The notes beneath the pieces were generated by a model. That model was given only the letters and a program-made list of their open reading frames with translations, ran no database searches and was not told where the DNA came from. The position numbers were made by a program, and so were the translations under genes. From Oopsacas minuta (Eukaryota > Animalia > Porifera), in NCBI GenBank assembly GCA_024704765.1, contig JAKMXF010000011.1:727557-791556 (forward strand): a stretch of 64,000 nucleotides of DNA, read 5' to 3'. Below, piece after piece: positions 24,169 to 25,545 of the stretch (within the stretch, counting starts at the first letter, position 1; each line of letters opens with the position of its first letter).

Positions 24169-25545
24169 ATGGCTACACAAGTCACAAGTGAAATTACAGA
24201 TTGTATAGCGTTACATTTTGGGCGTAGCGGGTGTGGATTTGGTGAGAAGTTCTGGGAATTAGCTTGTAAAGAACACGACCTATCGTTATCTACTGGAGAA
24301 GGGAAAAATTTATTTCGTAATTTTCAATCTCTATTTTCTCAAAATGAATCTGGGTTATACAAAGCTAGAGCTTTATTTATTGATCCAGATGGTCAAGATA
24401 TTTCACATTTGAAGAATGGCCGTGTTAAAAATATAACAGACACAGACTTAAACTTTCTAACTGATAAAGAAGATGGATTCGGAAATTTCGCTGCAGGTTA
24501 TTACATTAATAATGCGAATATGCTCAAAGAATTGGATCCCAAACTCAGGAAAATGGTAGAATCTTGCGATAAGACTCCAACCTTCCTAAGCACAGTTTCA
24601 TACAGTGGTGGTTCCGCGGGTGTTTATTGCCGCGTAATGAGTAACATTTTACATGACGAATTCACGAAATCAACGCACATCAACTTCGGGCTATTTCCTT
24701 CACCAATCCTTGGTAGATCAAGCGTAGACTCTTACAATTTTATTCTATCACAAGCTGCCGAAGATTGGGGAAAAAATTCAAATTTCATAAGAGTTATATT
24801 TGATAACGAAGCACTGTATGCTTCAAGTGCACGACATAAGAATACTTTAGATCTAGGCTATGAACATGTAAATCTCGAAGTAGCAAGGGTAATGAGTTTA
24901 TTAACTAGTTCAAATAGATTTAATACTAATCCAACAGCTGACCTGTCTAAAATGATCGTGAAACCTTTGTTAAATTACATTACCCCTTCTTATACACGTA
25001 TGCTTGGGGAAGAGAGTGATACGATCGAGTTTGATACGACTTATCCTCTGTTAATGGAGGGCGGAGCACTTCTAGCTAGTTGTCCTCTCGATAAAGTATT
25101 AGCAGATAGTGTATATACAAGAGGAATTGCACCATCATATTCTTTTCAGGAGAAATTGGAAGCAACTATTAAAAATTCTGAAAATACACTTTTTGAAAAT
25201 ATACATTTTGATCCAAGAGCGATTCCAGTTAGGATGACAGCGTTCGATACATTTGAATTAGGTCGGTTAACTAGTAATAAAGGAGTAATTGAAATGTTGA
25301 AAAGAGAAATGAAAAGATTTGATTTGGCCCATGCCAAACGGGCATTTGTATTTTGGTTTGTTGGTCAGGGAATGGAAGAAGGGGAATTCTCTGAATCGAG
25401 AGAACACATGGAGAAGGTTTATACAGAATATAACGATGGTTGTACTCTGACGTCATCAAGTGAATCTGATAGTGATGATATTAGTAATAATAGTGGAGAT
25501 GAGAATCCACAATTATTAGCTGAAGTTGAGAGTTTAGAAATATAA
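24169..25545 (+). CDS. Highly divergent tubulin (alpha-like C-terminus), intronless
   Basis: [61 protein letters not shown]. The likely start is ATG 24169; the longer ORF begins inside a MITE. Confidence 0.9.
   Translation: [458 protein letters not shown]

Follow-up and report, generated by a model that had tools for sequence, protein, structure and literature searches.

A divergent, apparently alpha-derived tubulin of Oopsacas minuta with a constrained nucleotide face and remodelled minus-end and lateral faces

A stretch of 64,000 nucleotides from the genome of the sponge Oopsacas minuta (GCA_024704765.1, contig JAKMXF010000011.1, positions 727,557 to 791,556 of the forward strand; the window, numbered from its first letter) carries a highly divergent tubulin gene at 24169-25545 (+). 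We refer to this gene and its product as the target tubulin, and to the target tubulin together with its seven orthologues as the target family. It is very probably a functional, expressed and constrained tubulin, alpha-derived and lineage-restricted, in which the nucleotide face is kept and the minus-end and lateral faces are rewritten. How it works is a more tentative matter: the protein may pair with beta-tubulin as a non-propagating subunit. For description and mechanism taken together, our best explanation, we estimate a probability of about 0.5.

Animal tubulin repertoires are thought to comprise six ancient classes plus closely similar isotypes, and lattice tubulins are among the slowest-evolving and most constrained proteins known. 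The target family is of interest as an alpha-derived gene that lies outside this slow regime and has been kept for long, as saturated synonymous sites indicate, in one animal lineage. Its lattice-building surfaces appear to have been rewritten selectively, with the nucleotide surface and, in silico, the beta-tubulin surface retained.

Fold and Distribution of Constraint

The target tubulin is encoded by a single exon:

24169-25545 (+): target tubulin, complete coding sequence, 458 codons plus stop (intact open reading frame, PF00091 match, alpha-tubulin matches in the Protein Data Bank, predicted tubulin fold)

No introns interrupt it, and the frame, described in the initial annotation as intact over 458 codons, proved so in a check of open reading frames (ORFs). 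Because the eight family members share a start of MAT[QHN] at the equivalent of 24169, this position is taken as the start, within a mechanical ORF that opens upstream at 24007. The protein matches the Pfam family Tubulin (PF00091) with 90 bits against a curated cut-off of 33 (E 3e-25); the Pfam family Tubulin_C gave no match at E 0.01. A sequence search of the Protein Data Bank (PDB) returned 170 tubulin sequences, the best 60 of which are all alpha-tubulins (E 5.5e-44 to 4e-38). The AlphaFold2 model, built on an alignment of 84 sequences, has the full two-domain tubulin fold, comprising an N-terminal Rossmann-like GTPase domain, the H7 core helix, an intermediate domain and H11-H12 (predicted local distance difference test score, pLDDT, 85.6; predicted template modelling score, pTM, 0.87), with low confidence in the first six residues, the loop 348-351 and the tail only. 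Its best Foldseek matches are the alpha chains of tubulin dimers (TM score 0.77-0.80).

Invariance within the target family, identity to alpha-tubulin and the ratio of nonsynonymous to synonymous substitution rates (dN/dS) are unevenly distributed over the faces of this fold:

Nucleotide (plus-end) face: 54% of positions invariant in the family; O. minuta protein 41% identical to alpha (family consensus 43%); dN/dS 0.076 (face loops)
Minus-end face (T7, H8, H10): 22% invariant; 9% identical to alpha (consensus 14%); dN/dS 0.19 (T7-H8) and 0.17 (H10-S9)
Lateral elements: 23% invariant; 12% identical to alpha (consensus 15%); dN/dS 0.13 (M-loop region only)

The nucleotide-face loops have the lowest dN/dS of the regions compared, which also include H11-H12 (0.20); the outer surface of H11-H12 is 36% identical to alpha. 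On the minus-end face, identity to alpha is 27-51% in beta, in epsilon and in seven of eight further divergent tubulins compared, so the lopsided conservation is not a generic tubulin pattern; only the L011 paralogue, a second divergent tubulin of this genome described below, and P0104 (16% each) approach the 9% of the target tubulin. On this sequence evidence, constraint and residual alpha likeness are concentrated on the plus-end face (T1-T6 loops and H11-H12 loop), and the minus-end face (T7, H8 and H10) and the lateral loops (H1-S2, M-loop and S9-S10) are shortened or rewritten.

Alpha Ancestry and Distribution of the Target Family

In BLAST comparisons the target tubulin scores nearly equally against the genome's own alpha and beta tubulins. 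Class assignment by BLAST is therefore not possible, and the near-equality accounts for the impression, recorded in the initial annotation, of a protein mixing alpha and beta signatures. The target family is monophyletic (100/100) in a first tree (54 rows, LG+C20+F+G4). Its stem is 1.6 substitutions per site long, and a 100/97 split puts it on the side of alpha. The third tree (51 rows) covers alpha, beta, gamma, delta and epsilon; its named delta, epsilon and gamma references were obtained via the genome's own locus L016, and the genome's own gamma gene, L014, enters as a rough gene model joining its matched segments. Here the target family falls inside the alpha clade (100/99), and delta (100/100), epsilon (100/99), gamma (99/99, with L014) and beta (100/98) form separate clades. 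On the third tree, an approximately unbiased (AU) test rejects a grouping of the target family and the L011 lineage with beta (ΔlnL 31.0, p 0.012), a rejection reached only after the sister lineage and the named outgroups had been added. Descent of the target family from alpha-tubulin is well, though not overwhelmingly, supported by these trees. Thus the mixed features that had been noted are real at the N terminus, but the ancestry appears to be alpha.

An alternative is that the target tubulin belongs to one of the known minor classes (delta, epsilon, zeta or gamma) and has diverged fast in glass sponges. Clusters named "Tubulin delta chain" are nearest to the target tubulin in a language-model feature search, and the missing Tubulin_C match is shared with many delta-tubulins. 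However, the genome's own delta (L016), epsilon (L005/P0204) and gamma (L014) genes fall in separate clades, the AU test on the third tree rejects the target family with delta (ΔlnL 29.2, p 0.021), and a BLAST comparison of the target tubulin with L016 found no significant match. A delta identity was accordingly discarded, the delta clade containing L016 and not the target tubulin. We regard membership in a minor class as very improbable, and for delta, epsilon and gamma it is largely refuted. The view that this is a real non-canonical tubulin is upheld, and the superfamily phylogeny that had been proposed as a check places it in none of the minor classes covered (delta, epsilon and gamma).

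The seven orthologues, found with a word-index search, are 54-71% identical to the target tubulin, and the next match is only about 26% identical. A profile of the eight family sequences was compared with 1.84 billion protein cluster representatives; its own cluster scored 867 bits, and the best single-copy matches outside it scored at most 186 bits and are alpha or divergent alpha-like proteins of about 25-30% identity. Four higher-scoring entries (P0011-P0014, 189-238 bits) were rejected as relatives, being mis-predicted fusions or duplications of canonical alpha- or beta-tubulin in which several matched stretches inflate the scores. Since nothing nearer than generic alpha-tubulin was found, the family is confined to eight genomes as far as public data go. 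Judged by its sequence divergence, it is an old, lineage-specific subfamily, about 25% identical to alpha and as distant from it as recognised classes are from each other; the word "isotype", used in the initial annotation, does not fit such a separate lineage.

Nucleotide-Binding Loops, Position 254 and Tail

Alignments to canonical tubulins locate the following elements in the target tubulin:

24220-24240 (+): T1 loop and start of H1, residues 18-24, G-R-S-G-C-G-F, with R19 at the Q11 position
24373-24399 (+): S2-T2 segment, residues 69-77, L-F-I-D-P-D-G-Q-D, invariant in 8/8 family members, with D69 and an acidic residue at E71 kept
24466-24486 (+): T3 loop, residues 100-106, K-E-D-G-F-G-N, with the invariant G105 at the N101 position; predicted beta-tubulin contact
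24598-24624 (+): T4 loop, residues 144-152, S-Y-S-G-G-S-A-G-V where canonical tubulins have the G-G-G-T-G-S-G signature
24937-24954 (+): core of the T7 loop, residues 257-262, A-D-L-S-K-M against alpha V-D-L-T-E-F (HMMER alignment to alpha)
25336-25404 (+): H11 to H12 motif of alpha type, residues 390-412; residues 383-396 make predicted contacts with T7/H8 and H10-S9 of beta
25438-25542 (+): tail at the C terminus, residues 424-458, rich in Ser and Asp, with a Q-x-L-x-E-V-E core that is conserved, no EEY/F end and low model confidence

The replacement of the T4 signature, of Q11 by Arg and of N101 by Gly were all read correctly in the initial annotation, as was the retention of the equivalents of D69 (D72), N206 (N213), Y224 (Y231) and N228 (N235). 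The T4 loop of alpha is F-G-G-G-T-G-S-G-F. That of the target family has the consensus S/T-G-G-[SGC]-[ATVS]-G-[VI], with S144, Y145, G147, G148 and G151 invariant, and does not meet [SAG]-G-G-T-G-[SA]-G, which we take to be the PROSITE tubulin signature. The target family shows no variation at the contacts to base, ribose and Mg (D72, D74, D102, S144, N213 and N235) or at the glycines of T1, T3 and T4, and the positions of Q11, A100, T145 and G146 vary; at the Q11 position Arg, His, Ser or Gly is found between the invariant G18 and G21. A derived S2-T2 motif nearly identical to that of the target family occurs in the L011 lineage.

Outside the pocket, the N terminus combines alpha-like C-I..H and L.C.EH features with a beta-like KFWE, and the C-terminal helix region is of alpha type, both as first described. 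Relative to canonical alpha the protein has an 8-residue N-terminal extension. The H1-S2 (K40) and S9-S10 loops, whose shortening had also been noticed, are 6 and 13 residues shorter than in alpha, the latter also being about 5 shorter than in beta, and the M-loop region is 3 shorter. Neither the long H1-S2 loop nor the 8-residue S9-S10 insertion specific to alpha is present. The tail was correctly described as Ser/Asp-rich and ending in LEI; orthologues end in ESS, DEH, EID or DEL, and the Glu-rich EEY/F tail is absent.

In alpha-tubulin, E254 triggers GTP hydrolysis on the neighbouring beta subunit, and its loss would slow hydrolysis. The target tubulin has ADLSK in the T7 loop, with K261 at this position, in agreement with the initial annotation, and D258 (alpha D251) is invariant in the family. 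Sequence alignment thus places Lys rather than an acidic residue at 254 in O. minuta, but among the eight family members the site is Lys in four, Ser in three and Glu in one. The absence of a conserved catalytic Glu therefore stands, whereas a beta-like reading of the Lys does not: because orthologues have Lys, Ser or Glu here, the Lys marks a loss of constraint and not a beta-like adaptation.

Gene Order, Selection and Transcription

The immediate neighbours of the target tubulin in the window are:

22019-22729 (+): upstream neighbour, leucine-rich repeat (LRR) part of an F-box/LRR gene (Pfam LRR families; same neighbour on the orthologue contigs)
25841-27893 (+): downstream neighbour, a TM9SF/EMP70 gene of two exons (25841-26598 and 26897-27893) with a GT..AG intron (Pfam EMP70, splice junction)

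The gene order HDNR, DCAF15, F-box/LRR, tubulin, two-exon TM9SF and RhoGEF is common to all seven orthologue contigs, which come from seven other assemblies; from this shared order and the divergence of neighbour genes we infer that these genomes belong to related glass sponges. The TM9SF gene served as the control both for dN/dS and for the origin of the sequencing runs. For most species pairs, synonymous sites of the target family have reached saturation. The six pairs that have not give a dN/dS of 0.12-0.24, against 0.03-0.045 for the adjoining TM9SF exon in the same pairs. The target family is clearly under purifying selection, which is several-fold more relaxed than in the TM9SF neighbour.

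Four public sequencing runs hold the locus. Three are DNA-like, with flat depth and contigs that continue through the TM9SF intron. In the fourth, X4, the TM9SF exons reach depths in the thousands compared with 22.6 for the intron contig, and a loose end at 26598 continues with the letters of the start of exon 2 at 26897, which is the spliced TM9SF junction. This exon/intron contrast and the junction indicate that X4 contains spliced mRNA; no run is listed as RNA on record, and its RNA origin was identified from these two features alone. Contigs from X4 tile the tubulin ORF (24181-25865) at k-mer depths of 260-585, and we take this as evidence that the target tubulin is transcribed, at a level below both neighbours.

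A decaying or neutral retro-copy whose frame is open by chance might be suspected from the single exon, the extreme divergence from the parental class and the loss of signature motifs. This explanation is already refuted, and we give it practically no weight: the frame is open in eight genomes over saturated synonymous divergence, dN/dS is 0.12-0.24, synteny is conserved, the locus has RNA coverage, and the full-length fold is predicted with confidence. The initial annotation had also argued against a pseudogene, and the orthologues in conserved synteny bear this out; the gene is neither untranscribed nor evolving neutrally.

Several further observations concern the sequence around the gene. 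One X4 contig, matching from 24133 on, that is, 36 bases 5' of the start codon, carries 12 unmatched letters ahead (AAAAAAACTTAC), which could represent a 5' untranslated region (UTR) splice, a leader or a variant. Another X4 contig (25037-25865) links the 3' part of the tubulin ORF, via the 295-base spacer, to the first codons of TM9SF (start 25841). The 3' UTR of the tubulin and the 5' end of TM9SF may abut or overlap, and a contig over two genes does not prove a single transcript. (TAA)n repeats directly follow the tubulin stop codon (window 25545-25560). The intergenic stretch upstream of the tubulin (22860-24130) is repeat-rich, with depths of 400-5500 in the DNA-like runs, compared with about 55-220 on the flanking genes, and with many loose ends. 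A 126-base skip from 23968 to 24095 was considered as an intron and rejected, since its ends (TC..TG) are not splice-like and it is present in the DNA-like runs as well; it is probably an indel or haplotype difference. On contig ena:ERZ26869290:ctg310763 (13.7 kb; L024/L025) the tubulin-TM9SF pair occurs twice, inverted and meeting inside TM9SF, most likely a palindromic assembly artefact and not a real duplication.

Predicted Pairing with Beta-Tubulin and Proposed Function

A complex was predicted from residues 1-430 of the target tubulin and residues 1-430 of the genome's own canonical beta-tubulin. It scored 0.84, compared with 0.00 for the best of three controls. Of 78 solved complexes, 51 pass the mark used for such scores, as do 2 of 108 mismatched pairs; for eukaryotes, the figures are 39 of 65 solved pairs that have no similar complex in earlier structures and 2 of 126 unrelated pairs. 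Contacts agree between runs to at least 89%, and the partner pLDDT is 87 or higher. The predicted interface brings T3 (100-106), T5 (180-188) and H11 (383-396) of the target tubulin against T7/H8 (249-261) and H10-S9 (327-351) of beta. These modelled contacts have the intradimer alpha-beta geometry, with the target tubulin in the seat of alpha.

We propose that the target tubulin takes the place of alpha in a longitudinal dimer with beta-tubulin, or with a beta-like paralogue, via its kept plus-end face, and that its modified pocket, at the place of alpha's non-exchangeable N-site, probably still holds a nucleotide. The minus-end surface of such a dimer would be unable to dock in the usual way on the following beta subunit or to set off GTP hydrolysis in it, and the dimer would have weak lateral contacts. 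A subunit with these properties would be expected to act in chain termination, minus-end capping or beta sequestration, and not as a building block of the 13-protofilament lattice. The remodelled minus-end face and the shortened lateral loops argue against ordinary incorporation into a lattice.

A specialised but lattice-competent alpha isotype, co-assembling with beta, for example in stable streaming bundles of the syncytium where slower GTP hydrolysis would stabilise microtubules, is in our view improbable. Such an isotype would accord with the alpha ancestry, the predicted alpha-position pairing with beta and the alpha-type outer surface of H11-H12 (36% identity). Loss of the catalytic Glu would slow hydrolysis, and cytoplasmic streaming in glass sponges, to our knowledge the only largely syncytial animals, is microtubule-dependent. 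However, the protein is just about 25% identical to alpha, all three lateral-contact elements are shortened, and identity on the minus-end face (9%) is well below that of beta or epsilon. Position 254 drifts, unlike a tuned stabilising residue, and dN/dS is several-fold above that of the neighbour gene, whereas lattice tubulins are highly constrained.

It is similarly doubtful that the target tubulin is a repurposed, non-polymerising protein of tubulin fold, binding neither nucleotide nor beta and serving as a monomeric scaffold or regulator via its tail motif and remodelled surfaces. The degenerate phosphate loops T1, T3 and T4, the lack of a Tubulin_C match at E 0.01, the remodelled minus-end and lateral faces and the conserved Q-x-L-x-E-V-E core in an otherwise variable tail would suit such a role. 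Against it, the residues contacting base and ribose and the acids of the Mg site are kept and invariant, constraint in the protein is strongest on the nucleotide-face loops (dN/dS 0.076), and the predicted interface with beta uses exactly these loops.

Several points weigh against the proposal of an alpha-derived, beta-pairing, non-propagating subunit. The long stem (1.3-1.6 substitutions per site) makes the deep placement fragile; a beta affinity was not rejected by the AU test when the sparser first data set was used (p 0.10), and the feature search drew the protein towards delta clusters (0.93-0.94). Changes at the equivalents of the phosphate contacts Q11, N101, G142, T145, G146, S147 and G148 make nucleotide binding less certain. 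The complex score may derive from the predictor's knowledge of solved tubulin dimers and shows likeness, not binding, and the boundaries of the "faces" follow general knowledge of the alpha-tubulin structure rather than coordinates. Contig depth is a crude measure of expression and comes from a single RNA-like run of one sample.

A Second Divergent Lineage and Other Tubulins of the Genome

The genome encodes a second glass-sponge long-branch tubulin, L011 (contig 303, L011:1483-2769 (+); P0159), a tail-less protein of 428 amino acids with a canonical S-G-G-T-G-S-G T4 loop, Lys at the E254 position and D205 of T6 replaced by Ser. It is named "Beta-tubulin 2 tubb2 [Oopsacas minuta]" at NCBI but lies on the alpha side of the tree; judged by this placement, the beta name is a misnomer. 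Its five orthologues (63-72% identity) come from the same assemblies as the target family and branch congruently, and L011 family dN/dS (0.09-0.18) and rates are close to those of the target family, the rates being near-equal. L011 is about 27% identical to the target tubulin; its lineage and the target family have in common short S9-S10 loops and a derived T2 motif, I-D-P-D-x-Q-D. In the trees the two appear as sister groups with support of 92/76, and of 99/95 in the third tree, a join flagged as one of long branches. A search for shared derived residues found six shared states, three of them in one motif, with no enrichment over control lineages; since the shared states are not enriched, sisterhood depends on the tree alone. 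The L011 lineage may be the sister of the target family.

These parallels raise the possibility of a private second tubulin pair, in which the target family and the L011 lineage dimerise and form a separate non-hydrolysing polymer or a stable complex outside the alpha/beta lattice. The sister position in the trees, the shared motif and short loops, the common assemblies and congruent branching, the near-equal rates and similar dN/dS, and the Lys at E254 in L011 too are all consistent with such a pair, as is the combination of one degenerate and one intact pocket, which loosely recalls alpha/beta. Yet the join is that of two long branches, the derived residues in common number only six, with no excess over control lineages, and any two genes from the same genomes would be expected to co-occur and to evolve at equal rates. 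We consider the pair unlikely. In a more speculative form, to which we attach still lower probability, glass sponges would use a private heterodimer of target tubulin and L011, with no catalytic Glu in either subunit, for non-dynamic filaments or caps in the syncytial cytoplasm. If true, a division of labour like that of alpha and beta would have arisen a second time, independently, within animals. The target and L011 families together offer a testable handle on how a microtubule cytoskeleton adapts to a syncytial body plan, and on which tubulin surfaces can change with fold and pairing kept.

The tubulin family looks unusually diversified in the small O. minuta genome, which yields at least 32 matches to PF00091, including several further divergent or tail-less alpha- or beta-like genes. 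L007 and L009 are alpha-like (41% and 34% identical to alpha), and L008 and L010 beta-like (42-49% identical to beta). Several multi-exon alpha-like copies (L013, L018 and L019) cluster on contig 22 at about 564.9-580.7 kb. L016 (contig 222, L016:1480-2715 (+)) is a sponge delta-tubulin, with a feature similarity of 0.96 to delta clusters, named delta relatives and a position inside the delta clade (100/100); it is recorded at NCBI as "Tubulin beta-8 chain isoform A [Oopsacas minuta]", an apparent mis-annotation.

Comparison with Known Tubulins

No description of the target family was found in the literature searched, and the genome papers of O. minuta (PMC10280926) and Aphrocallistes vastus contain no mention of tubulin or microtubules. 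The target tubulin can be compared with canonical alpha-tubulin (the genome's own L002/L003; PDB 1JFF chain A type). Both are placed in the alpha clade (100/99) and share the fold (TM score about 0.8), the alpha-type H11-H12 motif and the equivalents of D69, N206, Y224 and N228; by prediction, the target tubulin would also occupy the intradimer seat on beta. In contrast, the target tubulin is about 25% identical to alpha, has the T4 signature, Q11 and N101 replaced and E254 not maintained, and differs in its shortened K40 loop, M-loop and S9-S10 loop, its 8-residue N-terminal extension, its Ser/Asp tail and its dN/dS of 0.12-0.24. Beta-tubulin carries K254, and the O. minuta protein has Lys at the same site, but the residue is Lys, Ser or Glu among orthologues, and beta affinity is rejected.

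Delta-, epsilon- and zeta-tubulins go back to the last eukaryotic common ancestor and are linked to centrioles and basal bodies. Like the target family, they are about 25% identical to alpha/beta, have divergent loops and are presumably not bulk lattice subunits; the target family, however, is confined to one sponge group and branches inside alpha, and the genome's own delta, epsilon and gamma genes lie elsewhere. The six ancient classes have been reviewed (PMC4202323). The L011 lineage has in common with the target family its alpha-side placement, long stem, I-D-P-D-x-Q-D motif, short S9-S10 loop, Lys at E254, host genomes and similar dN/dS, and differs in its canonical T4 loop, its lack of a tail and its identity of only about 27%; the sisterhood of the two is uncertain. 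In kind, the closest parallel described so far is Paramecium kappa-tubulin, a divergent tubulin of one lineage that falls within alpha (PMC11321004). Both kappa-tubulin and the target family are lineage-restricted divergent paralogues that trees assign to alpha and not to a seventh ancient class. The one is from a ciliate and the other from an animal; an independent origin is to be expected, and the likeness, drawn from descriptions, is one of kind only.

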